Source of the DNA: Cyanophora paradoxa CCMP329
Lineage: Eukaryota; Plantae; Glaucophyta
Assembly: GCA_004431415.1 (NCBI GenBank)
Contig: QPMI01000114.1
Location: forward strand, 1 to 64,000
Direction of reading: 5' to 3'
DNA length: 64,000 bases
Below the pieces are notes generated by a model, which saw nothing but the letters and a program-made list of their open reading frames with translations, searched no databases and was not told the origin of the DNA. Every line of letters starts with the position of its first letter. Position 1 is the first letter of the stretch. Shown here piece by piece: positions 2,406 through 64,000 of the stretch. The position numbers and the translations under genes were made by a program.

Positions 2406-2421
2406 AAGGTTTCGGCAACCT

Positions 2422-4305
2422 ACCGCCCCGCCCCGCGCCGCCCCGCCCCGCCCGCCCCGCCCCGCCCCGCCGCCCGCCCGCCCCGCCCCGCCCCGCCCCG
2501 CCCCGCCCCGCCCCGCCCGCCCGCCGCCCCGCCGCCGCCCCGCCCCGCCCGCCCCGCCCCGCCCCGCCCCGCCCCGCCCCGCCCCGCCCGCCCCGCCCGC
2601 CCCGCCCCGCCCCGCCCGCCCCGCCCCGCCCCGCCCCGCCCCGCCCGCCCCGCCCGCCCCGCCCCGCCCCGCCCCGCCCCGCCCGCCCGCCCCGCCCCGC
2701 CCCGCCCCGCCCCGCCCCGCCCGCCCGCCCCGCCCCGCCCCGCCCCGCCCCGCCCGCCCCGCCCCGCCCGCCCCGCCCCGCCCGCCCGCCCGCCCGCCCC
2801 GCCCCGCCCCGCCCCGCCCCGCCCCGCCCCGCCCGCCCGCCCCGCCCCGCCCCGCCCCGCCCGCCCGCCCCGCCCCGCCCCGCCGCCCCGCCCCGCCCCG
2901 CCCGCCCCGCCCCGCCCCGCCCCGCCCCGCCCCGCCCGCCCCGCCCCGCCCCCCGCCCCGCCCCGCCCGCCCCGCCCCGCCCCGCCCCGCCCCGCCCCGC
3001 CCCGCCCCGCCCCGCCCGCCCGCCCGCCCGCCCGCCCCGCCCGCCCCGCCCGCCCGCCCCGCCCGCCCCGCCCCGCCCCGCCCCGCCCGCCCCGCCCCGC
3101 CCCGCCCCGCCCCGCCCCGCCCCGCCCCGCCCGCCCCGCCCCGCCCCGCCCCGCCCCCGCCCCGCCCCGCCCCGCCCCGCCCCGCCCCGCCCCGCCCCGC
3201 CCCGCCCGCCCCGCCCCGCCCCGCCCCGCCCCGCCCCGCCCCGCCCCGCCCGCCCGCCCCGCCCGCCCCGCCCCGCCCCGCCCCGCCCCGCCCCGCCCCG
3301 CCCGCCCCGCCCCGCCCCGCCCCGCCCGCCCCGCCCCGCCCCGCCCCGCCCCGCCCCGCCCCGCCCCGCCCGCCCCGCCCCGCCCCGCCCCGCCCGCCCC
3401 GCCCCGCCCCGCCCCGCCCCGCCCCGCCCCGCCCCGCCCCGCCCCGCCCCGCCCCGCCCCGCCCCGCCCCGCCCCGCCCCGCCCCGCCCCGCCCGCCCGC
3501 CCCGCCCGCCCCGCCCCGCCCGCCCCGCCCGCCCCGCCCCGCCCCGCCCCGCCCCGCCCCGCCCGCCCCGCCCCGCCCCGCCCCGCCCGCCCCGCCCCGC
3601 CCGCCCGCCCGCCCCCGCCCCGCCGCCGCCCCGCCCCGCCCCGCCCGCCCCGCCCCGCCCCGCCCCGCCCGCCCCGCCCCGCCCCGCCCGCCCCGCCCGC
3701 CCCGCCCCGCCCGCCCGCCCCGCCCCGCCCCGCCCCGCCCCGCCCCGCCCCGCCCCGCCCCGCCCCGCCCCGCCCGCCCCGCCCCGCCCCGCCCCGCCCG
3801 CCCCGCCCCGCCCCGCCCCGCCCCGCCCCGCCCGCCCGCCCGCCCCGCCCCGCCCCGCCCCGCCCCCGCCCCGCCCCGCCCCGCCCCGCCCCGCCCCGCC
3901 CCGCCCCGCCCCGCCCCGCCCCGCCCCGCCCCGCCCCGCCCGCCCCGCCCCGCCCCGCCCGCCCCGCCCCGCCCGCCCCGCCCCGCCCCGCCCCGCCCCG
4001 CCCCGCCCCGCCCCGCCCCGCCCCGCCCCGCCCCGCCCCGCCCCGCCCGCCCCGCCCCGCCCCGCCCCGCCCCGCCCCGCCCCGCCCCGCCCGCCCCGCC
4101 CGCCCCGCCCGCCCGCCCGCCCGCCCCGCCCGCCCCGCCCCGCCCCGCCCCGCCCCGCCCCGCCCCGCCCCGCCCCGCCCCGCCCCGCCCGCCCCGCCCG
4201 CCCCGCCCCGCCCCGCCCCGCCCCGCCCCGCCCCGCCCCGCCCCGCCCCGCCCGCCCGCCCCGCCCGCCCGCCCCGCCCGCCCCGCCCCGCCCCGCCCGC
4301 CCCGC
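2422..4305. repeat. ~1.9-kb (CCCCG/CCCG)n microsatellite; G-quadruplex-prone (GGGGC)n on the minus strand
   Basis: Directly visible run made only of C and G. Confidence 0.97.
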
Positions 4306-18100: not shown

Positions 18101-21100
18101 CCCGAAGAAGGGGGTCTGGGACGGGGACATCGAAGGCAACCTCCGCCCCATCACGCTCCAAGAAGTCGGCCTGAAGCTAGCGACGGGCCTGCTCACGAAG
18201 CGACTAGCGGATGCTATAGAGAAGCACGGGGTCCTGCAGGGGGTGAACTATGGCTTCAGGAAGGCCAAGTCGACGTACGACGCCCTGCACCTCACGGTGG
18301 CCATCCTAGAGGACGCTAAAGAGCACCATAAACCCATTTATATCCTGCTCCAAGACATTCGGCGGGCGTACGACTCAGTATCGTGGGTCAGCATGGAGCT
18401 CTCCTCCGCCGGATCGGGGCCCCGGAGGGGTACATTGACCTGCACCGCAATATCTTTGAGCGGCGGCGCGCGCGCGCGATTACAGGGCACGGACTCTCTG
18501 ACGCTTTCGAGCTCGAGTGCGGCCTCCCGCAGGGCGGCATAGAGTCCCCGCTCCACTGGCTCATCTTCTACGACGCCCTCCTCTGCGCCCAGCAAGAATT
18601 GGACAGAGTCGACTGCGATCAAGGCGGGGAGGGGGTCGCGTACGTTCTGGGCGATGCGGTCGCGGACGCCGGGCAGCCTCGCGCGCGCGTCACGGGGTGC
18701 GCGTACGCGGACGACACCCAGTGGTGGAGCGGCACAGCGGCCGGGATTCAGAGACTGGCCGACGTGGCTTCCGAGTTCTTCCGCATGCACGACATCACGG
18801 TCAACGCTTCGAAAACCGAGTTCACGTACAACAACGTCTCACCCGAGCCAGAGGCCCCGCTGCTGGGCCATCCGCGCGTGCCGGTCGGCAAGAAGCTGGC
18901 GCCGGGCGCGCACTTTAAGCTGCTCGGCGTCTACCTGACCGCGAACCTGTCGTGGACGGAGCAGATCAGACAGATGGAGGCGCAGGCCCGCGAGACCGTC
19001 GCGGTCATCGCACGCAAGCAACTGACCGCACAAGAGGCCTGCTACATCGTCGAGGCCGTCGTGCAGGCGCGGATCGCGTACGGACTCAAGGTGGTGCCGC
19101 TGTCGGAAGCCCAGTGCGACCGGCTGGACGCCATCTGGCTGCGAGTAGTTAAGCACCACGGCGGACTTGCGGCGTCAACGTCGAACTATGCGCTCTGGAG
19201 CCACGGCACGTATCGCCTCCCGCGCATGGCGCACCTGATGGCCAAGAACCAGATCACGGACCTGCTCGCGCGGCTCTGCGGCGAGCCGGACGAACTACTC
19301 TCCCAGGTGATGGCCCACCGCGTCCATGCCCTCCAGCGCAAGCTAGGCGTGCCGCTGCTGCCGACAGAGTTTCTGAACGCGCACGTAACGCCACAACTCG
19401 CGAAGGCCAACACGATCGCCGCTGTGATGCCGCTGCTGCAGCGCCGCCAGTACAGGATCCAATCGAACCACGCACGATACGTGAGCGCCCCGTACCCCCC
19501 CGGGGCCGGTGTACCCTGGCCGAAGCCGGCAGAGCTCTTGCGCGAATACGTGCTGGCGACGCACATCCCCAAAGACATCTTCAAAGACGCCGCCCCTACC
19601 CTCTACGCTGCAGGCATGTACTGGATGTCCTCTGTCACGGCGCGCGACGGTGAGCGCCTCTGCACCTGGCGGGACCTGCACCTCCGAGCCCCTCGCGACA
19701 CCCTGCCCTGGGCCGCTCCTTCCTGGTGGAAGACCCTCGCCAAGGCTCTGACGCTAGACGCTAGTGGCAAGGGTGCCCTTCGGTACCCGATGAGGCAGCC
19801 CCCCGGTACCCCACCATCAGCCATGGCGCAGCTGCCAGGCGGAGCTAAGAAATACATTCACCGACCGGACGATTTCGTCTGCTACTACGACCTGGCGACC
19901 ATTCACGATGCGACGATACCGCCCCACGTCGGCCGCCTCCGTACGGCGGACTCCGAGCCGGGCCGCCTTGTTGCGACGGAATGCCGTCTCGAACACTGGA
20001 TCCCTGTCCCGGAAGAAGCGGACCCGATCGCCGACGGCGCCTACTGCCGCTGCGATGGACACTGTCAGCACGAAATCCGGGAGCCGCCCCTTGCGCAGCG
20101 CCGCTACAATATCATACCCGGGGAGGGCCGGCGGCACTGGCACGACGATCACACATGCCCGCGAGCCGCCGGCGCGGCCTGCCGGGCGACGAGCACCTGC
20201 GACGACGCAGGGGAGCACGGGACCTCGGTCGGGGGCTGGGTCGAACATGCCGCCGCGCTGGGAGCCGTACCTGGCGCCGTGTCCACAATTGAGCACGACG
20301 ACGTGCCCGCGGCCGAGTGTGAGGGCCAGACCTCCACCCGCTCAGGTCGCGCCAGCCGCAAAGTACTCTCGCGCCAAGGCCTGCTTGAATACTTTCACCC
20401 CGCACGGGCAGCGGCGGCGGCGATGGATGCGCACCGATGGCGGATGCTGCTGCAAGCCAGGCAAGAAGGGGACGATCGCGTGCAGTGGCACTCCCTCTCG
20501 CCCGAGGATGCCGCCCGCCTCGCCGAGCTGGAAGCGGACCCGCCGGAGCCGCTGCACCTGCCGCAAGACGAGGCGGCCCCGATTACCCCTAGGCAGGCAC
20601 GGAAATACTACTACGCACTGAGGGACGAAGACTCCTGGGCGACCTTCCTGCAGGCGTGGGATGGGCTGGAAGCGAGCCTCCGCCGCGAGCTGCGGGAAGC
20701 TGAAGCCGCCACTGACGGGACCTACGAGGCGGCCGCGCCGGCCCTGGCCTGGACGGACGGGAGCCTGCTGGACGGTCAGACGACCCTAGCGCGCGGAGCT
20801 TATGCGATCCACTGGCCCGCGCGTCACCTGCGCACTGGCGCGAGCCTCCACCCGCCGGAAGTCTTTCCCAACTTTCGCGCCCGCCTGAGTGGGACGCAGG
20901 AGATCAACAAAGCGGAGTTACAGGCAGTGCTTACGGCGGACATACTCTCCCCGTTCGGAGCCGTGGTCCACATCGACAACCAGAATGCGATCCGCTGGTG
21001 TAGGGAATTTGTTCTCGACGCCGCCCAGCGTAGCCCGCGGGAGTACATCCGGCACGTCTGCTCTGCCGAACTATACGCGTGGCGTAAACTCAGGGCCCAA

Positions 21101-23516
21101 CTAGATTTGAGGGGGCGGCCGCTCACGCTGGTGAAAGTGAAGGCGCACGCGCAAGGCGAAGCGCGCGACCTGCACAATGACGTTGCCGACGCTCTTGCGA
21201 ATCGCACAGCCGACGAACAACTCCCTGCAGAGAGCCTTCACGAGCCCGTCTTCCTGCCGCCGGAGTTCAGCATGCCAGCCGTCCTCACAATCGGTAACGG
21301 GGACGGCACCGTGCGACGGGTGGAAGGCGACCCGAAGGAACACATGGACACCTTACATGAGCATCACACGCACTTCGCCTGGGCTCAACAACCACTGGCT
21401 GGAGCAGTTCTACGCCGCGGAAACGCCGGGGCAGACATCGGCGGCCTGTATGCTGAGACGACCGTAGGACCCAGGTTCCGCGGCGCGAGCGGAGCTCGCA
21501 ACGCGCTCTTCAAGTTCAGGACCCAATTGATCTGCAGCTCGCTCCCAGCGAACGAAGTCCGGGTACGGGATAGGCCCGACCTCTACGCAGCCTACAACCC
21601 GGGCGGCCGCTGCGCGGCTTGCGCCACGAGGACTCCATGTGCCCGGCGGAATCGAGCGAACTCGTCGGAGGCGAGCGAGCAGCTCGTGCAAGCCGGCCCT
21701 AGCCGACAGCGCGCGGCCCCCACAGCTCTCACCGCGGGCCCAGCAGAGACATACACGCACGTCTTCCTGTGCCCGGGGCCCCATGCAGTGGCGCACCGCG
21801 CGGAGACCGCCCGTGAGCTGAATCGCTTCCTGCGGCGCGTCCACCGCGAGGCTCACGGCCCCCAGCCCAAAAACGTCGATCCCACGCTGGCGCTCGCTTC
21901 CGGTCTTGTGCCCGCCTACCTACGCGTAGCTGACGATGACGCCGCAGCGCGCAGACTCGACGACGACCCGACCGTCTTCCCGCGGCTCTGGGTACTCCAG
22001 GGCGTCGCTCCTACATCGCTCGAAAGCGACCTGATCCGTCGGCTCGACCTCGACCCGCGCCGCGCACCCCGCACGGCTAAGCGCGTGCGCCAGATGCTAA
22101 TAGAACGCGCGCGTCGGCTCTGGTCTGACAGGTGTGCAACCAACGCCGCATGGGAGAAGGACTGTCGCATCTCCCAGGCCTCCAAACGCCGCCCGCGCCC
22201 GCGCCGCACAGGGGCTAGAGCTAAAGAGCGCGCCCGCGGCCCTCGTGCCCCGATAGAATACTGCCCCGCCTGCGACGGGCCCCTGCACCTCCATAACGAA
22301 CTCCGCGCAGCCCAGAACGCGGACTGCACGCCGGAATACCGAGGATGGAAGGCAGCGCTTCAAGCCCAAGAACTCTACGACAGCACCAAGGTCCGCCCCT
22401 GGAGCCTGCCCCCCCCGGACGATTAACCTACCCTCGTAGGGGGATGGGGGGGGGGGGGGGGGGGCTACCACTGGAGGAGACGCGGAGACACGGAGACTCC
22501 ATCACTACGCCCACTGACGACCTCACTCTCAACCTATCACCTACGGCCGCTCGCTGGGCCCTCGCGCCCGCCGCCGACCCGCCGTCGCCTGCGCGACCTG
22601 CGCCTCCACACCTCTCTCGCTACCGCCGACACGCTCGCCTCCCGCCGCCACCGCTGCTCTTGCCCCCCCTGCCCTCTCTCGCCCGTTGCCCCAGTCGCCC
22701 TTCCCCACGGCCCCTCCCCCCACCCCTCTCCGCCCTCACCGTTCTGCTGATCTCCCGCTACCCCAGGGAGGGGACGGTGGTGCGAGCTGCCAGGTGGAAG
22801 GTCGTCGGTCGGCCGCTGAACCCACCGGCGCCTGCCCCGGCCACGCGCCAGGCCGGGGCGGTCGGACCGCCGCGGAGGGGGCTCGTCATTGCCCGCGGCG
22901 GGGGGGAGGCGGTCGGCGGGCGGCTGGAAGCCCGGCGGAACGCGCCACTGGAGCCTCCCTTCTCCCGACCGCGGCTGCCCGACCCGGTCCTCCCCCGTCC
23001 TGTCCCACCGCCCAACGTCGCCCCATGCCGTGCCCTCCTCCCTGCCCCCGTCCCCCTTACCCCCGACCAACCTTCCCGGATGCCCTGAGCCCGGCGGCTC
23101 CACCAGGCTTGCTCTCGGACGAGCGAGCCCCCGACCCGACCCGCCGTGCCGACGACACGGCGGGCCGTACGCTAGCGTGTACAGGGAGGTTTAGATTATA
23201 GTGCGCCTTCTCGGAGGCCCTAGCTTACTAGGCATAGCGCTAGCTACAGCTGCAGCTCACTTCGCTGCCCACCTCTGATTTCTATTCTCGTCCCTGGGTA
23301 GTCACTCCCTTTCCCGCGTATACGTAGGATCTTTCCTGTGCTGCAGCTCTAGACTTAGTCCCCGGGGTAGCATCTCCAGTTACTTCCACATCCGAGCTCC
23401 ACCCGGTCCGATGTCCGAAAGGCTTAGTCCCGTAGGCTCATCTCTCGACTTGACACAGATGGACACCTCAGTTCCATCTATAGCCATTTGTCTCGGTGTG
23501 TGCGAATTCATTTATG
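15130..23516 (+). mobile_element. Near full-length non-LTR retrotransposon (APE endonuclease-RT-RNase H-Zn finger), 8.39 kb
   Basis: Flanked by the perfect 15-bp TSD cccgctcaagcttcg at 15115-15129 and 23517-23531. No poly(A) tail. Confidence 0.93.
15754..22426 (+). CDS. LINE ORF2 polyprotein with two frameshifts (~16220, ~18400)
   Basis: APE motifs: MTFNTRG, ALQE, SVYMP, LLGDWN, RIDAV, SDHFPV. RT motifs: RPITLQE, QDIRRAYDSV, GLPQGGIESP, AYADDT, LLGV. RNase H motifs: WTDGS, INKAELQAV, HIDNQ, KVKAH, NDVADALA. Zn finger: CAAC...ETYTHVFLC. Confidence 0.93.
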
Positions 23517-38700: not shown

Positions 38701-41700
38701 ACGGGCGGCCGCCGGGCTGATCATGATCATGAGCTCGAGGGGCCCCATCCCTGCCATGTCCCACCGGCCCGACCCGCCCTGTTCTTGTACCTGTTGCCTT
38801 GTAGAGCATGTGAAGAACTCAAATAGCTTTCGTTTATCGCTTTTCTGGACCCAGCAGAGCCTGTGCCGTGCCTGGGTGCCGTGCCTTAGCCGCCTTCCCT
38901 CATTTTGACGGTCACGTCGACAAATATTGAACCACCAGCGCGCCATCTCGATATAAATGAGTGACATTCTGAAAGAATAGTATCTTATGAGTGTGTGTAC
39001 TCATTTTCGCAGCGAGCGCGAACGTTTCGGACGATCCACGTTAACATGAGTCTTCAGACCGGAGTATAGTACTAGACCTGACTTCACTAAGTTCGAATTC
39101 ATCTTCACATCTACTTCATCATCGAGAGACCTTCATGATCACCGCCTCGGAACGTTCGTTCGAAGCATGATATTTAAGTTCCGGAACGTTCGTCGAAGCA
39201 TGATATTTAAGTTAAAATGAGATATTTAGACTATGGTCATCTTGATTCCAAAGCGGGAAGTCGCTGGGAGTACTACGGTACTGGGTCTTTGATCATGAGG
39301 CGGGCGGGGCATGCTCGAGCTGCAGGCCTCCCGCGCGCGCGCGCTGGCCCGGCCCTGTGCGCTTGAGTGAAAAGCCGGTGCTAGTGCGGGTTAACCCCCG
39401 GCCGGAAGCCTAAACAAGACCCGCGGCTTGACCGCCGCGGCGGTACGCCGTGATAACCCGAGGGCACCTGCTCGTGCTCCGCCGCGTGCCGCAGGTGCAA
39501 CTTGCATGCAGCGGGGCGCGTCGTGCGGGCGCAGGTACGTTCTAAAGAAGATGAACATGCGACTGCAAGCGGCGAGAGCCTCGGGGAAGCCGAGCAGCTA
39601 AAGTCGCCCGCGGCTTAGGCCGCGCGCGGGGAAGTCCCGGGTCCGACTTGCAATTGGCGAGCCTCGGAGCGCGGGCCGCCGTGCGCTGATCATGATCATT
39701 TCAGGTCCGGCCACAAAGCTTAAGTTCCCTGCCAGGCTGCAGCTCACCATCCCATCCCTCGTTCCAAACAACGCAATGTGCTGAAAGCGTAGCGTCGAGT
39801 GCTTGATCATGACAGAATACGCATGAACAAATGCTATGCTATGCTACGGGTGGCGGCAGAGAGCGCCTGTTGCCGCAGCCGCAAGGAGCGCCAAGGATGC
39901 TTGCGGCGGGAGCCAGGAGAGCCGGCCACAGCGGCGGGGCTATGAGGGGCGCGGGCTGGGAGCCGGCTGGCCGCGGCGGGGACGATGGAACGCCGCGCGA
40001 CGACGGGCAGCGCCGGATGGCGCAGGGCGACAGAAAACTGGCCGAGGCTGGCGGGCAGCGCCGGGTGCATGCGGCGGGGAGGATGGGGCGGCATTGCCGC
40101 GGCACGGGACGATGGGTAGCGGGACGCAACAGATAGCGGCCGTGTGCCGCGTCGGGGCGAGCAGAAGAACTGGCGGCGGAACGGTGAGCAATTGGCGACC
40201 GACGCAAAAGAAAGAGAAAGGAAAGCGTCGCACCGCAACAAGCGGGACGCGCCCACAGCTGGCAAAGCTTCGATGCGCAGCTGCTCGCTGCGAGTATCGC
40301 CGCCACCGTAACCGTTCTGCAGCATGCCAGCAACTGGAGCATGTGAGAACAGCGGAAGGGAGGCGCACGTCGCGGGGCCGCGAACCATGTGAACTGCGAT
40401 GATTGACGATAGCGAAATGTCTCCGCAGTGTTTCCCTGCGGACAGACTGCGTCACACAGCTGGGAGGCAGGATCCGCGCAACTGGCCGGAAAAGCAACGC
40501 TCTGACCTGCGCAGGCTCTTATAATGAGTCTTTGGAGCCATTCTACACAGCTGGAACGCTTAGCTGTGGCCGGACCGTTGCATGCGATTCGCTAAAACGA
40601 CCGCACCGGCGCCTCCAGTCCCGCCTCAACATCTTCTGAGTTGTCACAGAGTCCTCTCAAGCTGCTGAGCTGCGCGAGAGACGAGGTGGTCAGGAAAACC
40701 TGCCGGCAAGCCGGCAAGCGTCGCACCTGCGGACGGCCTGGCTTGCGATGACGTCTGCCCGGTATTGAACCTGCGGACGACGGCGCGTGTGCGTGCGCTG
40801 GCAGGTGCGAGCGCCGGGGGCGAGAGGTTGCTTGGCAGCGGGCGGCAGTCTGTCTAGATGTGTATGTACCCTAGCGGCCTGAGGCCGGGGAGACGTACCC
40901 ACCCACGGGCGTCGACGCTGCTCCCGCTGTCCCTGGCACTGCGAGGCGAGTCTCATGGCAGAACCGCGTCAAGTTCCATATTCTTGCGGGGGAAGCGACG
41001 CCAACGGACTTTTCTTCTGGCGATCCACCCAAAGAGCCGAGCGACGAGACATTCTCACAGGAAATAACAGCAGGCAATTGCAACGGAATGGCAGCAGCAG
41101 CGGCAGCAGCGACTGCCGTATCTATATTCATGAAACAGGCAAGCCAACCAGTTCGGAAGCTTTTGACACGAGCTGTGGCTGCGGCTTCTCAGCATGGATA
41201 CCTGGCCATACAGCGGGAGGACGAGGAAGAACTTCATGGAGATAACCTGGACCAAGTTAGTGTAGAAGTTTCTATAGTTGCAGGGGAATCATATATTCGG
41301 CGTGCCACTGCTATACCTTCTAGGTCAAATATTTCGGTTTCCGATTCAGGTGTTTAAGCAACTGAGACTTGGATCAAGACAGAATGCCGTTTCATCAAAT
41401 GGGTCTTTTCAGGCATTATTATTGGTCTTGTTGGGTCCGCTGTGCTGTGCTGTGGCGCCCAGCTGTGCAACCAGCCCGTGCGCTACACACAGGATTGCGC
41501 CGTGGCTGCGGGGTGGTGGGTCTGTATTGGGAGCCGTGGCCATGGTGCAGTCCCGGAGGGTACAGCGAGACTACTGACTGGGGTACATGGTACGAGTGGC
41601 TCGACTCAGTGGAAACCAGGCTGGCAACAGCATATATTATGGTCCACCGTAGCACAAAAGGACAGTACAGTACGCATTGATCCACACAGTCAATTGCATG

Positions 41701-42627
41701 CAACGCACAGTAGCGTGTACATCACGTACATGTACGTATACATGTACATACATGTATAGCTAGTCTATCAGTACTAGTATACGTACAGAGTCATATATGC
41801 ATGACTCAGTGATCATGCCATGATGTGGGAAACCGGGTGAGATGGTATCATGATCACTGACAAGCATGCGCAGGGGGGCTCCGCCCCCCCGCACCCCCCC
41901 AGAATTTTTCAGAAAACTTAAAATGACCTGACTCAGTGATTCATATAATTATAAATAACTATCAGCATAAGAAAGGAGATCTAGAAGCTCTAGGGCTGAA
42001 TAACATTCTACTATCAAGTGAAGAAAGAAGAACAATTGATATATATCATATATGCTATATATGATCATCGGATGTTTTGATTTGGAAAACTTGAAAGCAC
42101 TTCGTTGTGCTTCTTGTTTTCTGTTGGCTGGGAGGAAACACTTCTTCATGATCATGGGCAAGCTTGACCGTACCTGGACATCATGATCAGTCGATCATCG
42201 AAATCGGAATCATAATTACACAAGCAACAATTGCAAATACGGCAAGGAAGGCGTGCTTGGGATTAATCTCTATAGCTAGCGCTAGATTGATATTCCAATG
42301 AACTCTTTCATTCACAATAACACTCGGAGAAGACAATCTTCAAAAAACACTTACTTGTACTTGCAATTGTTGTTTATAAATTAATTTGCTGTTGGCTGAG
42401 AGGAAACACTTGGTCTATTTGTCTGTTGTTTGCAAATTCCGAGAATCGAGCAGAAACTGAACCGGCACTGAACAGCACTTCAGAAAGAAAAAAAGGGAAG
42501 AAAAAGGACCTTTCCATTGAAATGACTGCCGGATACATAATTTGAGCCTGAAAACTCCACTCTGTGGCAAATCCTACTGCTTTGTACTTCCAAGCTCACT
42601 GGCAAGAGCAGCGGCTGCCACTGGTTT

Positions 42628-45600
42628 CGATTTTCAACTGTACTCCAATTTCTCACCCAGCTCGTACCATGCTTTCGACCCTCACTCCTTTGCAGACCAA
42701 GCCCCATTTCCTTCAAGCATATGATGTCTTTTATGGCCTTAAGACTGTTGGTGTCTCTGACGTGGTAGACCAATTTTTCCCGATCGAGCTTTCTTATTAT
42801 CAATCTGTTCTCCGTACTGCCCCTGAGTCCTCCAATGTTGCTGGCCCCTCTGGTGCTAAGCCACCCCGCTTCCTCATTCGCCTTGGCGCCCAAGCCTTCC
42901 TGGCTGAACTCAAAACGATGGCACATCGTCCCGCATCGCTGATATGGCTGCGCGCTCTGATATTCAGCGTCCTGCTTCGGCAAATTTGCTTGACAGTGAG
43001 CTCCTCTCCTCGCTATGCCCGGTCTGCCACCGGCGCTGCAATGCACTGCACGTTTTCGTCCTCTGCCCTGTTGTGCAGCAGTTCTGGTCGCTCATCTTCC
43101 ATGCCCTGCAGCTCCAGCCGATGCCCATTCCTTCCGCTCGCTTTGTTGCCTGGTTGCTTACTGGCTCGGTCCGTTTTGCTGACAGCTGGATGTTCTTGCA
43201 GAACTGGGAGTGGCAGGTTGTTCGGATTCTTGGATTGCACGTCATTTTCCGCTCGTATTGTCTGGCCTATCGAGCAGGTCGCACTGAAGCTGCGGCTACG
43301 TTTGCAATGGACCCTAACACACAGCTGCCCCTTACACCTTCCTCCAAGACGGGCTTGAAGGCCGCTACTCTGATGGCTGCCTTGTTCCGCGAACTGGACG
43401 ACTTTATGGACATGCTTCCTCGTCGTTTACCTCGATTTAAAGTCACCTATGTCCGTGGGTATTTCCGTTTCATCTCTACTGCTGACCCCTCTCATTCTTC
43501 ATTCTACGCTAATCTTTTAGACGCTGCGCGTGCTTATGACCATTCCCTAGCCTCTTATGAGCACTGTGAACATATTGCTCAGCCTGCCCTAGCCCCGATC
43601 TAGCCCCTAGCCCCTTGTGGCTCAGTTTCCTTATGCCAGTGTGCGGCCTGTCCTGCTGCAGCGTCTTGAAAAGGAGGATCTTGAAGGCTATATGTCCCTC
43701 CTGACAACGGCTCAGACTCCTCTGACCTTTCCGACCTTGGCCCTGATGATCCTGATGATTCCTCCAGTAGTACCTCATCAGATGATGACGACCCCCCTGG
43801 TGGACCCGACCCTGCCCCTGACCCTGGTCCTGTGGTTCACTCACCCCCTCACCCGCTGCCACCTCACCCGCCGCCCGATATTGACTCGGAGGATGAGCCG
43901 CCTCTTCAATGCCGTCGTGTTGGTGCTTCAGCGTTTGGTCTTGATGCTGCTATAGATGATACAGGTTCACCTCCGCCCTCTCCTCAAGTTATCATCTATG
44001 TGGATGACACTGAGCTTGCCCCTGATCTGCTGCCGATCTCTCCTATCCGAATCGACGCTGTTGATGTTGAGCCCGACTTCGCGAGTCATGCTGTCATTGC
44101 TTCCCTAGCTCCTCCCTCTTCTGCCCCTCTGCCTTCTTCTGCGCCTATGACGCCCATGGATACTGATCCTCTTTCTCCTTCTATTGTCCCGCCTAAGCGT
44201 CGTCGAATGTCTTCTCCAGACCCTGGTGCTCTGGATCCTGGTGATAACATTCCTGGTGTCCCACCTCAGGTTTCTTTCAAACGCTTGCGGCCTTCACCTC
44301 CTCCAACTCTCCCATCCGCTGCCCCTATGGATCTCGCTGATGACCCAGGTTCCCCAATGGTGCTTATCTCTGACGAAGAGGCTGATGACATGACTGATGG
44401 CTGAAGGTTTCACACGTGAGGTCGTGACCAGGACTCCCCCAGGCCGGCATTAGGAAGAGGCCCGCATTGGGATGTCTGTGGTTGCTTTCCGTGTCTGCGT
44501 GTATGAGCGCCGGACCGCCGGGGCATACATGGTAGACCGTAAGGCGTTTGCGCCGCCACTACCCTTGTCTGGTTGGTTCACTGTCGATTGTGCTTCAGGC
44601 CTTCGGGTCCTTCGCCTTTCGTCAAAACCGCACAACCGGCTCGGGCGTGTCTTATACATACTCTTCTTCTTCAAAACGATGGCACTTAACCTTTCCAAGC
44701 CAGATTGTGTCTTTATGTCTTCGCTTCCTGTTGAGCGTGTAGAGCTGAATTCTGAGAACACCATCCCCTTCAATCCCTTCAAACTCGCTGGCTTGGATAA
44801 ATCCATTCCTTCTCCAGTTTTTCTGGCAGCTGCTTTTACTCAGCCTGTACTTGATATGGTCGCTAAGACCACTTTCACTGGCTCTGGCTCCCGCTATGAT
44901 CTTCTTTGTCGCCCTGAGCTTGGTGATTTCCCTGCTGCTCATACCGATCGTGCTCATCTTAGTCTCATTTTGAAAGTGCCCTTGGCTTCTATGCTCTTCC
45001 AGAGCCTCGAGCGTCGTACTAGTTTCATCAAGCCTCGGCCCGCTCGGCCCCTCGCCATGCGTTCCCTCATGATTCTTGGCTCGGATAACTACATTCACAA
45101 ATTTTATGTGCAGACTCTTCTTCCTGAGTACTCTTCTCTTGAGTATTATTCCTCTCTTGCTCACAATGGCAAGGCTCTCGATCCTTCTTCTTACTCTTTT
45201 GCCTCCACCTCTCCTTGCTACCAGATCCCTTGCCAGGAGCCTGACAAAAATTACAGCATTCTTGATGTCGATGAGCACACCTTCTTGTACCACTTCCATC
45301 AGGATCCCATGTTTTACTTTTTGCCTGCCTCTGTGCGCCCCCGCCTCGATGCTTTTTATGATGAGGCTCGCAAGCAGCTGGCCCTTGAGAAATCGTTTTC
45401 TGATTCATTTGAGGAAGGTCAGCATCTCGATGGCACTGGCCGTAGCCCTAGTGCTAAGCGTTCTCGCCCCTCTGATCCCTCTACTCCTTCTGGTTCTAAT
45501 GACACAATTGTGTAATTTTCTTCTGTACTTCTAATCTTGAATGATCGTCTTCGGTTTCCCTCTCTCCCGTCTTCCCTAACACCCTGTCTGGCCTGGTAGG

Positions 45601-45831
45601 GAGCAGGTCAGTTCAGTAAGTTAGGGCTTTTTCTTTGCATGGGGACCCTACGGCCCGGGTAGGGACTTTGTGCAGCTTGTCTTTCGCAGGTTCTCGAGAG
45701 CATCTCTCATCACTACCCACTGCTAGTGGGTCCCTGACGGAGCCTTGCAAGCTCCTTTAGGGGCCTCTGCGGTTCTGTCATACCCAGTCTTGCTGGCGTG
45801 GGCGTGTCTTTTACTTGCTCTCTCTCTCTCT
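42628..45831 (+). mobile_element. 5'-truncated retroposed copy of an RT-less single-ORF element, interrupted by a nested LINE fragment
   Basis: 13-bp TSD ctgccactggttt (42615-42627, 45832-45844) and (TC)n 3' tail. Near-identical to the reverse complement of 45931-47371. Confidence 0.88.
42925..44670 (+). mobile_element. 5'-truncated LINE (L1/Tx1-like zf-RVT C-terminus plus 3' UTR), nested insertion
   Basis: 15-bp TSD tcaaaacgatggcac (42910-42924, 44671-44685). Encodes CPVCHRRCNALHVFVLCPVVQQFW and ends in a (TCT)n tail. Confidence 0.88.
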
Positions 45832-45930
45832 CTGCCACTGGTTTTTTTTGATGCCACAGAGTCACATGTCACTCAGTGACTTTACCTTGTCCTGTGGAAC
45901 CCGTCTCAGTGACCACAGTGAATCAAAAAA

Positions 45931-48110
45931 AGAGAGAGAGAGCAAGTAAAAGACACGCCCACGCCAGCAAGACTGGGTATGACAGAACCGCAGAGGCCCC
46001 TAAAGGAGCTTGCAAGGCTCCGTCAGGGACCCACTAGCGTGGGTAGTGATGAGAGATGCTCTCGAGAACCTGCGAAAGACAAGCTGCACAAAGTCCCTAC
46101 CCGGGCCGTAGGGTCCCCATGCAAAGAAAAAGCCCTAACTTCCTGAACTGACCTGCTCCCTAACAGGCCAGACAGGGTGTTAGGGAAGACAGGAGAGAGG
46201 GAAACCGAAGACGATCATTCAAGATTAGAAGTACAGAAGAAAATTACACAATTGTGTCATTAGAACCAGAAGGAGTAGAGGGATCAGAGGGGCGAGAACG
46301 CTTAGCACTAGGGCTACGGCCAGTGCCATCGAGATGCTGACCTTCCTCAAATGAATCAGAAAACGATTTCTCAAGGGCCAGCTGCTTGCGAGCCTCATCA
46401 TAAAAAGCATCGAGGCGGGGGCGCACAGAGGCAGGCAAAAAGTAAAACATGGGATCCTGATGGAAGTGGTACAAGAAGGTGTGCTCATCGACATCAAGAA
46501 TGCTGTAATTTTTGTCAGGCTCCTGGCAAGGGATCTGGTAGCAAGGAGAGGTGGAGGCAAAAGAGTAAGAAGAAGGATCGAGAGCCTTGCCATTGTGAGC
46601 AAGAGAGGAATAATACTCAAGAGAAGAGTACTCAGGAAGAAGAGTCTGCACATAAAATTTGTGAATGTAGTTATCCGAGCCAAGAATCATGAGGGAACGC
46701 ATGGCGAGGGGCCGAGCGGGCCGAGGCTTGATGAAACTAGTACGACGCTCGAGGCTCTGGAAGAGCATAGAAGCCAAGGGCACTTTCAAAATGAGACTAA
46801 GATGAGCACGATCGGTATGAGCAGCAGGGAAATCGCCAAGCTCAGGGCGACAAAGAAGATCATAGCGGGAGCCAGAGCCAGTGAAAGTGGTCTTAGCGAC
46901 CATATCAAGTACAGGCTGAGTAAAAGCAGCTGCCAGAAAAACTGGAGAAGGAATGGACTTATCCAAGCCAGCGAGTTTGAAGGGATTGAAGGGGATGGTG
47001 TTCTCAGAATTCAGCTCTACACGCTCAACAGGAAGCGAAGACATAAAGACACAATCTGGCTTGGAAAGGTTAAGTGCCATCGTTTTGAGTTCAGCCAGGA
47101 AGGCTTGGGCGCCAAGGCGAATGAGGAAGCGGGGTGGCTTAGCACCAGAGGGGCCAGCAACATTGGAGGACTCAGGGGCAGTACGGAGAACAGATTGATA
47201 ATAAGAAAGCTCGATCGGGAAAAATTGGTCTACCACATCAGAGACACCAACAGTCTTAAGGCCATAAAAGACATCATATGCTTGAAGGAAATGGGGCTTG
47301 GTCTGCAAAGGAGTGAGGGTCGAGAGCATGGTACGAGCTGGGTGAGAAATTGGAGTACAGTTGAAAATCGAAGACAAGGTACGATGATGAGCTAAATAGG
47401 CGCCAAAGCCACCAACAACTGAGCGATAGTAAAACTGATAAGTGAAAGCATTAAAGGTAGCACCACTATAGGAATCCTGAGAAGTGGACTGCTTAACAAA
47501 GCCGTGCTTCGCGGAGGAGGACCATGGGTGCTGAGAGAACATGGAATTGATGGGAGCAAGGCGGTTCTGGAAGGCCGAGAGGCGGACAGATTCAGGGAGG
47601 TCACGGCCAAAGTCTGCAGGTTCATTCACGATGACACCTTCCTGGATACAGAAGCGCATGGCGACGGAGACATCATCGAAGGGCTTGCAAGAGCGAAGCG
47701 CATCGGCAAGGACAGTCTGAACATGCATGTACTTGGGCAGGCCGCCAATCTTGCGGGTGACGGGCCGCGTCATGAACGCGGCAAACTCGCGGACGCGAGG
47801 AAGGTGGTGGTAGTCAGGGACGCGGGAATTGCCCGAAAGCGATGGTGACTGAGCGTCAACAGCGAAGAAGTCGGCAACCTCCACAGAACCCTCAAGTGCA
47901 CGGGGAGCCGGCGGCGGTCCCTGCTGCTGGCGGCGCTGCCCCGGAGCACGGGGCGGATTGGCGGACATTCTAAAAGCTGCGTACAGTGGAGCAAAGGTCA
48001 GGATTGTCCGAGATGGAAAGATTTGAACGTTGGCTGGGCGAGCCACAAATCGGCGTCTAAGCGCGCAGCTGGCGGCCAGGATCTGCGTAAAGAGCGCACC
48101 CGTGCACACG
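45931..48110 (-). mobile_element. Longer, uninterrupted copy of the RT-less single-ORF retroelement (5' boundary uncertain)
   Basis: (TC)n tail at 45931-45942 on the minus strand and an intact ORF. No matching TSD found. Confidence 0.8.
46244..47968 (-). CDS. 574-aa intronless protein, putative LINE ORF1-like/RRM-like nucleic-acid chaperone
   Basis: Intact ORF from MSANPP. Two RNP2-like segments (RKIGGLPKYM, FKLAGLDKSI) and a C-terminal NLS-like PSAKRSRP. No RT, endonuclease or transposase motifs seen. Confidence 0.7.
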   Translation of the reverse strand: MSANPPRAPGQRRQQQGPPPAPRALEGSVEVADFFAVDAQSPSLSGNSRVPDYHHLPRVREFAAFMTRPVTRKIGGLPKYMHVQTVLADALRSCKPFDDVSVAMRFCIQEGVIVNEPADFGRDLPESVRLSAFQNRLAPINSMFSQHPWSSSAKHGFVKQSTSQDSYSGATFNAFTYQFYYRSVVGGFGAYLAHHRTLSSIFNCTPISHPARTMLSTLTPLQTKPHFLQAYDVFYGLKTVGVSDVVDQFFPIELSYYQSVLRTAPESSNVAGPSGAKPPRFLIRLGAQAFLAELKTMALNLSKPDCVFMSSLPVERVELNSENTIPFNPFKLAGLDKSIPSPVFLAAAFTQPVLDMVAKTTFTGSGSRYDLLCRPELGDFPAAHTDRAHLSLILKVPLASMLFQSLERRTSFIKPRPARPLAMRSLMILGSDNYIHKFYVQTLLPEYSSLEYYSSLAHNGKALDPSSYSFASTSPCYQIPCQEPDKNYSILDVDEHTFLYHFHQDPMFYFLPASVRPRLDAFYDEARKQLALEKSFSDSFEEGQHLDGTGRSPSAKRSRPSDPSTPSGSNDTIV

Positions 48111-49844
48111 GGGCGAGAGGTATGTGGGCCAGAGGCCAGAAATGGGGCCGACGGCCATCAAGGGTGCACTGGCAGCCTTCAAGTGCATATCGAATTGAGT
48201 ATATCAATGAGATGCCCAAATCTTCCATTGGCCTGCGATTCACAAGTTCCCCACTTACCGCACATGCTGGCACGACTGTTGGTAGCCCAGGCTGGACCAC
48301 CCATGGAGCATACTTCACTCAGTGAGTTTGACTGTTTGCACCGTAAACAATGCTGGCAGTTTGAGTCTGCCGTAGTACTAAAGCGCTTTTTCTTCCAAGG
48401 GGAACATGGGATAATCTACTACTGAGCATCGGAACTGTATGCATTTTAAGAGAGAGCTCGAGTTGATAACCATCAATATCAAACAGCAGATCGAGATATC
48501 GATCTAGAGAGATTAAAAGAACACAAGACTCTGAGACATAGAGAAATAAACGAAACACTAAATTCATAAAGCCTTGAAGAAATTGACAAAACACAAGGAG
48601 GTATGGGGAGGCGTCGCATCAGAGGAGGCCATCGGGAGAGAGAGAGAGAGAAATGCAGTAGACACATCCACGCCAGCAAGGGAGGCCATCGGGGCGGGGT
48701 GAGGGTCCTGCCCTGCAAAGCCATTGCGTTGGCCCAGTGGAGAAAAGAGGGGGGAAATGAGGCCGGCAGTGGAGGGAGGCTGGCGCCTCTTGCGGTGCAC
48801 ATGGGCGCTGCGGCAGAGGGAGAGAGGGAGCTCTGCAGCACTCGCAATCGACGGCCGAGAACAGCCGTCGGCCTGACCCCAAGGTTGCTGACGAGGCCGA
48901 GGACGGCCAGCTGTCTGGCCTCTCTGCCGGAGCAGGGGGCGGGCGGGTTGGTGCATGCACACGTGCTCGAAAAAAAATTTGCTCGGATAGGTACTAGGTC
49001 CGGCCAGGCAGGAAGCATGCGCACGTGCTCGAATCTGCACCTCAGAAGTGGGGCTTCCTCAGGAGGAGCGGCGAGGGGGGGTAGACCCGCCGCCTCCTCT
49101 GCCCCACCGCGAGGCGCAGGTCCTGCGACAAGGGCTACGGGGGAGCGGGCGGACCTGGGACGGCTGCAAACTTGAAAAGAGGCCGCACGCGCCCGTTGCC
49201 GCCGCCGGCACGTTCACGCCACCGGACACTGCACCGTGCGGCGGTAGCTTGCCGATCGGCATCCATTGGCTCCAAATCAACCAGCGACCAGCCCTCATCT
49301 CGGGCGGGGCGGGGGCAGAGGAGCAGCGGGGGTGCGCTGACAGCCAGTCATGGCGCGGGGCCACTAGAAGCACGCGCCGCGTCTTGAGGGCGAGCCCCAG
49401 AGCGTACGCCATGCGCCCGCCGCCGGCCCGGGGTCACGGCCGCGGGGCGTGCGCATGCGGGATTCGGAGCGCGCGCCTGCGGCGCCGGAGCGAAACGAGA
49501 GCAACTGCGACACGCGGGGGCTGCAATCCTCGCGGGCTCGGTCGGTGCTGAGCACATTCGACGCAGCGAGCGCAATCGCACCCAAATGGAAGGAGCGTAG
49601 AGCCAGAATGATGAGCGGCGCGGCCAGCAGCAGGCTGCCAGCAGCTTCGTGGGGGGTAGTCGTAGTCCTAATTTAGGGGGTAAGCAAACACAAGGGACTG
49701 CCTCTGTGGATCCGGAGGTGTGCACCGAGCAACATGAACACGGAAGTTTTCACCAAGCAACATGCACGCCAGTTCTTGCTGAACCGTGACCGAGTCCCGA
49801 AGTCCCGAAGTTCGAAACGACCTCGCTGAGCCCGGCGGCCTGCC

Positions 49845-59745: not shown

Positions 59746-62700
59746 ATGGCCCGCCCAAACGGAGCCGGAGCGCATGCATCACGCGTCAAACACACCGCTA
59801 GGTTGTCCCTAGCCCACCTGGGCCTGGGTCTCTTCGTCCTGGCGGTCTTGACCGCGGCCGTGCAACCCGGCTCCGAAATGGCAGGCGTTGAGCAGCAGCA
59901 ACATCAGTTTAGTAATAGGACGATAGAAGAGCCTAACCAGCTCGCCCTAGGGCCTAACCAGCCCGAAAACCTGGGTCTGACCAACCCGATTTGCCTGCTC
60001 GCTTGCGCGTCGCCCCCGATAACACCGTTTATGTACAACTTGTGTACTAAAGATAACAGAAACAGACCCAAAGGCCCCGGAGCACCGCCCTGGCCCGCGA
60101 GCGCGGACGACACGCTGGCCGCAACGGCTAGTAGGACTAATACCAGTTCCCTGATGACACACCTCCAGCTGCGCACGCAGGAGGGAGACGTTATTGTGTA
60201 TGCTCGACCTGGCCTGCGGCGAACGGAACTGGACACGTGCGTGACGAAACCCGGACGAGGACCTCGCGGCCGGGATCCCAACTGCAACGCGCCCAGCAGC
60301 GACGCACACCCTGACAGACTAAGAGACAAGCTGCACATCGCCCTTACCACGACAACGGCTCTGGGCTGGCTGCTCCACTCCTACGCATGTGCACACACGG
60401 CTCGCCTCAAGCTAAAGCAGCAAAATAAGCCTAAGGGGAGATCTAAAGCCGGGCTGGCGGGGCGCTTTAGAAAGTCGACTATGAAAAGGCTAAGCACCGG
60501 CCTGCTGCTGTGGCTCCTCGTCACCAGGTCGTCCTCGACACAACTGGCCCGGCGACCACTTTGCCCCCGACGTAACCGATCAGAAACGATGGCGATCTCA
60601 CTTTCTGTCCTACGCCACCAAGCTGTAGCTTCCCCGCCTGTCAGCGCCGCCGGCGCCCGGCTGCTAAGCCTCCTGCTCTTTATTGTGGGCCTGGCTACTG
60701 CGAACGCCCTGCCCCACAGCCAACCTGCGGCCGTGGGCCTTTCCTGGGCCTCGGTCTTCCAGCCTGCCGTGGCGGGGATGATAGGGGGGCTTCTCGGGAT
60801 CACAGCGAGGCGGGGGCAGGCCCGGCCCCCAGCGCCGGCACCCCCAACTGGGCCCACGAACGCACTTAGTCGCTGGAGCCCGCCCCCGGCTCAAGTCAAG
60901 GAGGCGCTGCGGGGCACGCTGAGGATCCGTACACAAAACGTACAGGGAGGAAACAGCTCAGACAAGACAAAGCTGCTTCTAGCAGACTGGGAGGAGAAAG
61001 TGACGCCGACCAACGGAGGCGGAGCAGGAGATCTAGATGTGGTAGCTCTCCAGGAGACGGCACTGGCGGACGACAAGTGGCCCCGACGAGGAGGCCGCTT
61101 CTTCCTCTCGGGACCTGCAGCGGACGGTACGGTCAGCGGCAAGGGAGCGGCGCTGTGGCTAAGCGACTTCTGGGCGCGCTACGGGGGACGCGTGCGTCGC
61201 GTACCGGGCCGCCTCGTGACGGTCGAACTCGAGCTGCCAGCGCACGTGCTCCTCACCATAGCGTCGGTATACCTGCCGTCAGGGGACAGCGCGGCCGAGA
61301 AACAGGAGCGTGAGACGGTGCTCGACGAACTGAGGCGCGTGCACGCCCGCACGGCGAGCGACCCGCGCGCCCACTGCCTAATCCTAGGAGACTTTAACTC
61401 GGTAAGAAACCCGGAGCTAGAGCGCATATCCGGAGGCAACTACTCCCAGTCAACAATCGCAGAGCACGACTTCTGGCAGCTATTCGCCGACTGGAAGTGG
61501 AAGGACCTCTATAGAGGGACGCACCCGACGGGCCGCGAAGTAACTTACATCCACGGGTCCGCTCGGGCGCCAGGCGAGCCCATCCTCACAGGATCCCGGG
61601 TCGACACAATGATGGCATCGCCGGCGCTCGCAGCCTGGACGCTGGGTGTCGGCATCGATATGCTAAACGAAGGCTGGCGCTCGGACCATCGAGGAATGGT
61701 AGCGGAGATCGACCTTGCCCCGCTGAAAGTGGTCGGCGCGACGCATCACCCGCGGACTGCCGCCCAGCGACCACCTCGTTTCTGCTTCCCGAAGAACATG
61801 AGCAAGTCCGACGAAGAGAAGTTCCACGCGACGATGACGCAAAAGCTCGTGCGCGGCGGGATGGTCAAGCGAGTCGAGGAGATGCTCGAGCTGGCGGCTG
61901 AGGCGCCTACGCCAACGAAGGAAACCCGCTTCGAAACACTGACGTTAGCTGTGCACGAACTACTGCTCGAAGCGGGACGGGCCGCAGCTAAGACGCTGGG
62001 GTATTTGAAGTACCCGTCCTCGAATGCGCCCCTCAAACCGTACAAGTTCAAAGCGCTGGAGCGCCGCCGGAAACAGATCGGCAGCCTCCTGCACCAATGG
62101 GAAGGCCTCAGATGGGGCGTGCGACTAGTACGACTCAGGCAATTAAACTCCAAACCGCCAATACCTGGCCTTCCCCCCCTCCCAGGGGACGGTCTCGAAG
62201 GGGGGGGGTACCTGGAACGACAGTGACTGGGTGAGGGCACGGAAAGCGCTGCAACGGGAGTGGCGCCGGATAGAAGACTCGATAAGCGCAAAGGGGAAAG
62301 AGATGAAGGACAAGCAGATCAGAGAGGCCCTCGATCTAAGAAGGACATGGTTCCGCCAAGAGCTAGGCAGGTGCCTCGATCGGTTGCTAGGACGCACTAG
62401 GGGCAGCCTGGCTTTCTCGACACTTGCACTCCGGGTCCCGGGAGAGGAACGACCTCGAATCATCGATAATGTAGATGAGCTAAAAGCGGAAGTCGCGACG
62501 GCCTTCAAGAACTGGGTACCCCCGCGTCGACCCCGTCTCCCCCAAACGGGCCACCCCCTTCCACCACACTGGCAAAGACGCTACGAGAGACAAAGACGAC
62601 TGCAGTACCCGAAGCTTATGAAGCCAATCACCGAGCAGGAGCTTAAAGACTACCTGGGACGCCTAGCAGCAAACACAGCGGCAGGTCCCTCAGCAATGGC

Positions 62701-64000
62701 GGCAGCCCTTTTAAAAAAGCTACCTCCAGCAGGGATGACGGCTCTGCTCGCCCTCCTGAACACCATACTTGTACACGGCCACCCGCCGGATTTCCTCATG
62801 GATGCAGTGATCTGTGCGATCCCAAAATCAGCTGAATGGGACGGGTTTGCAGACAGTACACGCCCAATCACGCTGCAGGAAGTGGTGCTTAAAGCCCTTA
62901 CAGGCATTCTGGGAAGGCGGCTTATGGACGCCCTCATAGAACAAAAAGCACTCAAGGGGAAAAACTATGCCTTCCTTAAAAACATGTCTACAGACGAACC
63001 TCTGCACATAGTGAACGCGATCCTTGAAGAAGCAAAGCGACGCAGAAGCGAAATTCACATCATTGCACAGGATATCAAGAAAGCCTACGACTCAGTCAGC
63101 TGGGCAAGCATGGAATTAACTTTTGAACGCTTCAACATACCAGAGGAATACGTGCGCCTCCACGAACACATCTGGCACCACCGAACAGCCAGAGTACTGA
63201 CCGCATATGGCCCCTCGGATGAGTTCTCCCCGGCGTGTGGGCTCCCTCAGGGCGCGCCCGAATCCCCGCTCCACTGGCTCCTCTTCTATGATGCCCTTCT
63301 CTGCGAACAGGAGTCTCAGGCAGAGGCAGAAGGACCAGACTCAGAGATCTCAGGGGTACAGATCGCACCTGCTCCGGGTGAACCACCAATCAGCTTGGCG
63401 GGAATTGCCTATGCAGATGACACAGACTGGTTTGCAAAAAGCCGCCGGGGGATCGAACTTAGAGCAAAAATCTCCACTGAGTTCTGTGAACTACACGATA
63501 TAGAGCTAAATGTGAAGAAGACTGAATATACAAACAATAGAGGGAAAAGCGTCTACCCGGAGGCCCCAAAAATGGGTACCCCACCCGAGACGATCGCGAT
63601 ATACCTCGAGCCCTCAGAACCCTTTAAGCTACTAGGAACCTATTTCACATGCAATTTAAACTGGAGCCGTCACAAAGCCCACACTTTCAATAAGGTAAAG
63701 AGCATTGTGACAGCTATCAAGGGGAAGAGAATGACAGCAGAAGAGGCAGTATATATCTGCAATGCAGTAATTGGAGGCAGTCTAAGATACGCTTTCAAAG
63801 TAGCGAATTTCTCGGACACAGACCTTAAAAACCTACAGGCTCTCTTCATGACGCTAGTAAAACATAGTGGGGGGCTCAGCAAAGCTACGGCAAACGCCTT
63901 TATGATGATGCCGGCTCCCTTTGGCTTGCTTTCGGTCCACTCAGTACAAGCAGAGGAACAGATATCCAAGCTACGAGCACACCTCATCTCTCCAACCTTG
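59746..64000 (+). mobile_element. Second non-LTR retrotransposon of the same family (APE + RT), frameshift at G-run ~62200-62210, truncated by the window end
   Basis: APE motifs: TQNVQG, VALQET, SVYLP, ILGDFN, SRVD, SDHR. RT motifs in the shifted frame: RPITLQEV, QDIKKAYDSVSWASME, GLPQGAPESPLHWLLFYDALL, AYADDT, LLG. Collinear with the 15754-22426 protein. Confidence 0.92.

Follow-up and report, generated by a model that had tools for sequence, protein, structure and literature searches.

The 64,000-nucleotide stretch of the Cyanophora paradoxa CCMP329 genome analysed in this work (contig QPMI01000114.1, positions 1 to 64,000 of the forward strand; referred to as the window) contains two copies of a ~2.23-kb element with a single open reading frame (ORF) of 574 codons. 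The element probably represents a young, low-copy family of non-autonomous retroposons without long terminal repeats (non-LTR retroposons), which lack a reverse transcriptase (RT), code for a protein, and are copied in trans by the enzyme of a long interspersed nuclear element (LINE). Because it has no RT or endonuclease of its own, the element must use an enzyme made elsewhere. The insertions carry the marks of target-primed reverse transcription, the ORF is transcribed and under purifying selection, and the 3′ terminus is significantly similar to that of a LINE-like fragment nested in one of the copies.

Most 2-kb bins of the window have a GC content of 60-90%. The region between 42 and 48 kb, where the copies are located, is an island of about 50% GC with strong strand asymmetry, the sign of which flips at 46 kb. 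The copies were compared by direct reading of positions 42000-48600, with a repeat finder, by pairwise alignment and by BLAST. In addition, contigs of four public sequencing runs (X3, X4, X17 and X18) were aligned to positions 42700-48699. X4 is a DNA run, whereas the other three are labelled RNA by guess only; summed contig depth is not a copy number, and contigs can give neither RNA ends nor RNA levels. In 20 runs on this organism, which come from 14 studies, 79-90% of the sampled words of the element are present.

Two copies of the element and their insertion sites

The two copies lie tail to tail and are 99.3-99.5% identical; the ~1,458 nt compared contain 7 substitutions and 1 indel. An initial annotation of this DNA, made from the sequence alone, had reported that the element occurs twice, and the alignments bear this out. 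Copy 2 (45932-48157, minus strand) is the full-length element. In the direction of transcription it consists of a 58-nt 5′ untranslated region (UTR) exon 1, which contains no ATG (48100-48157; the RNA contigs extend to 48129), a 123-nt GT..AG intron in the 5′ UTR (47977-48099; GTGCGC...TACGCAG), another 8 nt of 5′ UTR between the intron and the ORF, the 574-codon ORF (46244-47968; ATG at 47968, TAA at 46246-46244), a 3′ UTR of ~300 nt (45943-46243) and a (CT)6 tail, which is adjoined by the terminal 22-mer (45939-45960).

Copy 1 (plus strand) is 5′-truncated. It begins at about codon 200 and is split by the nested fragment into a first part at 42628-42924 and a second part at 44673-45831. The second part carries the ORF on to its end at 45515 and then the 3′ UTR, with the terminal 22-mer at 45800-45821 and a (CT)8 tail at 45818-45833. 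Direct reading and pairwise alignment revealed a target-site duplication (TSD), CTGCCACTGGTTT, at 42615-42627 and again at 45832-45844; its length is given as 11-13 bp because the first CT is ambiguous with the tail. The 5′ truncation, the pyrimidine repeat tail and the TSD, on which the initial annotation had based its assignment of copy 1 to target-primed reverse transcription, were thus all found.

A third insertion is located on the minus strand at 48637-48680. These 44 nt stem from a related element, of which they represent the tail alone: the upstream half has the same sequence as the ORF element, the terminal motif is a variant, and the end is (CT)8. The insertion is flanked by a perfect 13-bp TSD (48624-48636, again 48681-48693).

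The candidate TSD of copy 2, read directly from the sequence (ATCAA, 45922-45926, again 48157-48161), is only 4-5 bp long, and seven consecutive A (T when the element strand is read) lie at 45925-45931, between the candidate TSD and (CT)6. The DNA contig of run X4 stops at 48157. Another contig starts at 48158; the 19 letters ahead of 48158 in it match 45905-45923, outside the tail of copy 2, and this loose end has a single TCAA; it looks like an unoccupied site. Taken together, the contig end at 48157 and the contig resembling the empty site place the 5′ end of the element at ~48157, and not at 48110, where the initial annotation had ended copy 2.

Copies 1 and 2 are 90 bp apart within one older sequence. 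The spacer between the two tails (45845-45921) belongs to this older target sequence, which resumes at 48158 and beyond, and from 42614 downward. The target sequence is a genomic repeat in its own right: contig depth summed over the flanks is high in the DNA run, and a paralogue resembling the empty site is present. In the target repeat (42100-42614, 45845-45921, 48158-48620) GTCACTCAGTGAC-type motifs recur, and they are also found beside another insert in X4. The recurrence hints at a preferred target, or simply at an abundant older repeat.

Other contigs have different sequences next to the 3′ end of the element: X3 at 45929 and X4 at 45793/45832. At the latter there is a copy reduced to roughly 40 nt of tail and bracketed by a 7-nt repeat. 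Independent TSD-flanked insertions, which the initial annotation had proposed to look for, are therefore present in the window, and the different 3′ flanks in the contigs add to them. No LTR or terminal inverted repeat was among the repeats found, the tails are (CT)6-8, and the truncation points lie at codon ~200 and 44 nt from the end. TSDs of variable sequence, a constant 3′ end and 5′ truncation are the marks of target-primed reverse transcription.

Transcription, selection and protein product of the ORF

Contigs of 1.6-1.7 kb cover the ORF in three RNA-labelled runs, at depths well above that of the neighbouring LINE body. The contigs of X17 and X18 contain the joint 47976/48100, which skips positions 47977-48099; unspliced contigs are also present. 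A joint that has GT..AG on the ORF strand and is absent from the DNA run X4 indicates sense transcription and splicing of an intron in the 5′ UTR. The ORF, described as intronless by the initial annotation, is indeed uninterrupted, but the element as a whole is not intronless. As the intron is kept in the genomic copy, the RNA copied into DNA was unspliced. The presence of a spliceosomal intron points to transcription by RNA polymerase II.

When the two copies and the contigs from all four runs were compared, 10 coding sites proved variable, 8 of them synonymous and 2 non-synonymous (P = 0.0025, against the 32% synonymous changes expected under the observed transition bias). Between copy 1 and copy 2 all differences at coding sites (4 of 1127) are synonymous, whereas 4 of about 317 sites differ in the 3′ UTR. 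The 574-codon ORF is under purifying selection.

The predicted 574-amino-acid protein has a pI of 8.5, a basic, proline-rich N-terminus and a KRSRP-type basic patch near the C-terminus. Searches for relatives were negative throughout. The protein matched no family in Pfam at E ≤ 1, capsid models included, and none in PHROGs. There was no match in a word-indexed search of 5.8 billion proteins or in an exhaustive phmmer search of 1.84 billion representatives; the best hit among PDB sequences (E = 0.44) is meaningless, and no relative was found in the IMG/VR and JGI metagenome contigs. Exact-sequence look-ups of the 574-amino-acid ORF and of an extended ORF of 621 amino acids also returned nothing. 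The protein has no RT, endonuclease, CCHC, RRM or coiled-coil signature. The claim of the initial annotation that the element encodes no RT or endonuclease thus agrees with the lack of any such domain or homologue in the libraries searched. Scans of positions 41500-49000 with Rfam (E ≤ 1) and for tRNA genes gave no match.

Structure prediction by AlphaFold without an alignment had a mean confidence score (pLDDT) of 38, too poor for fold comparison. A language-model feature search placed the whole protein beside clusters of partitivirus, picobirnavirus and related capsids (score 0.93, 173 shared features), and the same capsid clusters were returned for residues 230-550 alone. The recognition value was low (860), in a range where high scores are weak evidence, and of the 10 best matches with a family only 2 shared family or clan with the top one. 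We regard the likeness to capsids as no more than a hint.

The nested LINE-like fragment and the common 3′ end

Copy 1 is interrupted by a 5′-truncated, 1,748-bp 3′ fragment of a LINE-like element (42925-44672, plus strand), which contains an ORF remnant (42926-44404), a 3′ UTR (44405-44660), a terminal 22-mer (44643-44664) and a (TTC)3 tail. It is flanked by a 13-bp TSD (42912-42924, again 44673-44685), of which 12-13 nt appear duplicated in the alignment. In other copies found in the runs there is one extra letter after positions 43586, 43610 and 43695. When the ORF remnant was read with N at these three 1-nt gaps, the frame was open from 42926 to the stop at 44404. The fragment therefore carries the final ~490 codons of a long ORF, whose C-terminal extension is acidic and rich in proline, and after them a 3′ UTR of 268 nt. 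A CCHC motif, C-x2-C-x7-H-x4-C-P-x5-W (43007-43087, plus strand), belongs to a type known from the C-terminal end of L1-type ORF2 proteins. Summed contig depth increases about 15-fold towards the 3′ end of the fragment, as expected for a population of 5′-truncated LINE copies. On the grounds of the CCHC motif, the marks of target-primed reverse transcription and the rise in depth, we consider it probable that the fragment is the 3′ part of a LINE. These features agree with the initial annotation, which had called the piece a LINE; an RT domain is not part of the piece.

The 3′ terminus of the ORF element matches that of the nested LINE, as had been noted before: the terminal 22-mers are identical at 19 of 22 positions, and the longer termini at 22 of 27. 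A search of the window for the degenerate 22-mer gave 3 occurrences, compared with an expectation of 0.00. Local alignment of the two 3′ UTRs scored above all of 500 dinucleotide shuffles (0/500 reached the score). Other properties are common to the two elements. Their sense strands are pyrimidine-rich, as originally described, with a C+T content of 63% (element) and 61% (nested LINE), against 51% for the window. Both prefer T- or C-ending, A-poor codons, unlike the other long ORFs of the window: their third codon positions are 66-75% pyrimidine and 6-11% A, with a GC content (GC3) of 0.39-0.56. The GC3 of the 574-codon ORF is 0.52, whereas that of the other long ORFs in the window is 0.70-1.00, with one exception, a LINE RT ORF at 62303-64000, which has a GC3 of 0.55 but only 46% pyrimidine at third positions. 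A TSD length of 13 bp is also common to the element and the nested LINE. Copy 1 was already in place when the LINE piece inserted into it; both were therefore recently active.

For the small stem-loops upstream of the termini, which the initial annotation had regarded as a common feature, the z-scores are between −0.6 and −1.7 and the minimum-energy structures differ, so folding lends them no support. The last 100 nt of the ORF element (copy 1 UTR) folds with z = −2.7, that of the LINE with z = −0.9. A terminal hairpin with a GTGTCT core can be formed in all three tails (91% of cells paired, one compensatory G-C to A-U change). Its support in the three-sequence set (169/500) has no statistical weight.

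The tail of the element has closer relatives than the nested LINE, and the 3′ end is also found behind other sequences. Upstream of the motif, the ORF element is matched by the third insert and its parent (loose end 48680), and the parent family of the third-type tail has a much higher summed depth than the ORF element, both in the DNA run and in the RNA-labelled runs. A contig of X17 contains the whole 3′ UTR of the element up to 46254, 8 nt before the stop codon, and then continues into a different upstream sequence, which, read by eye, has the frame of the ORF open as far as the identical TAA. This contig reveals a second ORF-bearing element with the same 3′ module. Finally, the terminal ~20 nt also follow unrelated upstream sequences (loose ends 48666 and 45760). 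With the tail standing behind several different upstream sequences, the terminal module looks portable.

In contigs of X17 and X18 (loose end 48666) a telomere-like repeat (TTAGGG/TTTAGGG) runs straight into the final ~20 nt of a third-type tail with its (CT)n. This junction represents either a tail-only insert within telomeric repeats or a portable terminal module that became attached to other RNAs. In other contigs the end of the LINE tail at 44671 is joined directly to 45378, inside the ORF element, and to 48679, in the third-type tail. These joints could come from LINE insertions nested in other copies, or be chimeras produced by template switching within one reverse-transcription event. 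If they are chimeras, they would be direct evidence of one enzyme copying both RNAs.

Several observations weigh against the proposed relationship between the element and the nested LINE, or against parts of the evidence for it. When the last 35 nt are removed, the score of the 3′ UTR alignment is reached by 72 of 500 shuffles; the part common to the two tails is only ~27-35 nt, and upstream of it the similarity is no better than chance. The tail repeats differ, (CT)n in the element and (TTC)n in the nested LINE. An RT domain was not found in the nested fragment, its match to Pfam zf-RVT is weak (E = 0.24, profile positions 58-85), and a homologue search with the 219-amino-acid nested piece was without match, so the LINE identity of the fragment is no more than probable. 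As for transcription, the RNA status of the runs is a guess, and the shorter side of the splice joint is 26-29 letters. An exact-sequence look-up of the 190-amino-acid LINE ORF likewise gave no match, and the single-sequence AlphaFold model of the LINE C-terminal piece (pLDDT 41) was too poor for fold comparison.

The window contains other LINE ORFs (RT at 16347-18539, endonuclease at 59746-62223 and RT at 62303-64000), none of which shows similarity to the nested fragment or to the 574-amino-acid protein. At 16347-22423 (plus strand) an RVT_1 ORF (16347-18539, E = 6e-8) is followed by a 1,213-amino-acid ORF without a Pfam family (18785-22423); the GC3 of 0.76-0.77 indicates a LINE family different from that of the nested fragment. 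At 59746-64000 (plus strand) an Exo_endo_phos ORF (59746-62223, E = 4e-11) is followed by an RT ORF (62303-64000, E = 4e-21), which probably extends past the end of the window. This is a third LINE family, and within the window it has no similarity to the nested fragment. The 2 kb at positions 2001-4000 are 90% GC, with a strong skew of C over G (−0.50).

Alternative explanations, proposed mechanism and known systems

We considered whether the element could be an ORF2-deleted derivative of a full-length LINE, the 574-codon ORF being the ORF1 of the parent and both ends being inherited from it, as in HAL1. The X17 contig that puts the 3′ UTR of the element behind another in-frame ORF, possibly an ORF2, would fit such an origin, as would the summed depth of the 3′ UTR (702-2168), which is above that of the ORF (421-615). 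However, 5′-truncated copies alone can account for the excess in depth, no contig shown joins the ORF to a downstream RT, the X4 DNA contigs pass directly from the ORF into the 3′ UTR, and the ORF is unlike any known ORF1 family in Pfam. We judge this origin unlikely. A different origin, by fusion of a foreign or host gene to a LINE tail through template switching, after which the fusion became a self-transcribing and amplifying unit, would be compatible with the occurrence of the terminal ~20 nt behind unrelated sequences at loose ends 48666 and 45760. The source could be the capsid gene of a partitivirus- or picobirnavirus-like double-stranded RNA virus, which has segments of such size and a one-ORF layout, and the capsid clusters returned by the language-model search, for the whole protein as well as for residues 230-550, point in that direction. 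Against a captured gene stand the low recognition value and the disagreement among the best family-bearing matches, the absence of Pfam capsid matches at E ≤ 1 (PF25666, PF20816, PF20895), of phmmer matches and of IMG/VR relatives, and the unusable AlphaFold model; moreover, the codon style is LINE-like rather than foreign, and the 5′ UTR has a spliceosomal intron. Gene capture therefore seems to us quite improbable.

The recent co-activity of the two elements, together with their common terminal motif, TSD length and codon style, could also mean that they form an obligate two-part LINE, an idea of the initial annotation, in which the partner has no ORF1 and the ORF element supplies that function and borrows the RT. 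Selection on the ORF does need an explanation in an element that is unable to copy itself, but it could reflect action in cis on the element's own RNA, as proposed for HAL1 and HeT-A. In addition, the LINE tail greatly exceeds the ORF element in abundance (13,526 versus ~420-600 in summed depth), so the LINE seems not to be limited by the ORF element, and we give the obligate partnership little chance. That the two copies arose by local inverted duplication of one copy, as their adjacency, inverted orientation and near identity might suggest, is extremely improbable: copy 1 has its own TSD and truncation point, the flanks beyond the two tails differ, the tails themselves are (CT)8 and (CT)6 plus a T-run, and the contig resembling the empty site joins the flanks of copy 2. 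The separate TSD of copy 1 and the different junctions led us to reject it. Three other classes were rejected as well. A processed host retrogene does not agree with the retained intron, the codon style typical of transposable elements and the lack of a parent gene in the libraries searched. The element is not an autonomous LINE, as it has a single ORF with no Pfam family at E ≤ 1 and no homologue among 1.84 billion representatives. With its length of 2.23 kb, a selected 574-codon ORF, no tRNA and no Rfam match at E ≤ 1, it is not a short interspersed nuclear element (SINE) either.

Trans-mobilization of an RT-less, protein-coding retroposon is thus the interpretation that we favour. A ~2.23-kb RNA would be transcribed from the element's own 5′ end. 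Part of this RNA would be spliced in the 5′ UTR and serve as mRNA for the 574-amino-acid protein with its basic, nuclear localization signal-like ends, whereas the unspliced RNA would be the template for copying. We infer that a LINE-made reverse transcriptase/endonuclease recognizes the terminal GTGTCT-containing motif just before (CT)n; the enzyme would then nick the target and copy the RNA by target-primed reverse transcription, giving rise to 5′ truncations and to TSDs of up to 13 bp. The supplier would be a LINE lineage ending in the same motif, with the nested fragment coming from that lineage or from a close relative. The nested LINE-like element is a plausible supplier of the RT, or a relative of the supplier; since the tail repeat differs and the similarity ends at ~35 nt, it may be a relative of the true partner. 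As to the protein, we would guess that it acts as an analogue of Gag or ORF1, binding the element's own RNA or escorting it. We entertain, as a speculation with a very slim chance of being right, that it is a capsid-like or Gag-like RNA-packaging protein, possibly derived from a partitivirus or picobirnavirus, and that it forms the structural half of a two-part retrotransposon with an ORF1-less LINE, the two being tied by a movable tag of ~20-30 nt. Where the initial annotation spoke of an ORF1-only partner mobilized by the LINE, the absence of an RT and the copying by an enzyme from elsewhere are retained, but the identification of the protein as ORF1 finds no support, there being no ORF1-like match or signature in the libraries searched; nor do an ORF1-less LINE and a mutual dependence of the two elements.

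Complete orphan though it is, the protein encoded by the element of this deep-branching alga is conserved and expressed, and the intron has been kept through retrotransposition. Identification of the role of the protein and of the supplier of the RT would reveal the benefit that a non-autonomous element derives from retaining a protein, the shortness of 3′ tag that is still enough for a LINE enzyme in this lineage, and whether two elements can divide the functions of a LINE between them. For annotators of the Cyanophora genome, the analysis offers a defined repeat family and a candidate LINE partner.

It is rare for an RT-less retroposon to carry a protein gene under selection. The classic examples, HeT-A and HAL1, each have a protein that can be recognized as Gag or ORF1. 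HeT-A, like TART and TAHRE a telomeric retrotransposon of Drosophila, resembles the present element in being a non-LTR element with one structural protein and no reverse transcriptase. Lacking pol, HeT-A must obtain RT elsewhere, and a symbiosis with an RT-bearing partner has been proposed (PMC2173066). However, the Gag of HeT-A is recognizably similar to that of TART, whereas the protein described here matches nothing in the libraries searched; and HeT-A is poly(A)-tailed and targets chromosome ends, whereas the element inserts internally, generates TSDs and has a (CT)n tail. HAL1 (half-L1) is a non-autonomous L1 derivative coding only for ORF1p and dependent on the LINE ORF2 protein (PMC5753468). 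It is similar in that a single ORF is kept and the enzyme comes from a LINE, but the ORF of HAL1 is L1 ORF1 and its ends are L1 ends, whereas the element and the nested LINE have only ~30 nt of the 3′ end in common.

The general principle of stringent LINE/SINE pairs is a common 3′ tail (PMC5786205). Like the SINEs of such pairs, the element combines a LINE 3′ terminal sequence, presumably the RT recognition tag, with a short-repeat tail, but it differs from a SINE in being 2.2 kb long, protein-coding and intron-bearing, and in having no tRNA, 7SL or 5S head. UnaL2 and UnaSINE1 of the eel are an example of a stringent pair. With processed retrocopies and LINE-tail chimeras the element has in common that they are RNA-mediated copies made by a LINE enzyme in trans; it differs from processed retrocopies in that it is multi-copy and self-propagating, keeps its intron, has a selected ORF and has no parent gene that could be found. 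From HeT-A, HAL1 and the LINE/SINE pairs the element differs in its orphan gene, its retained intron and the very short part of its 3′ end that it has in common with a LINE.

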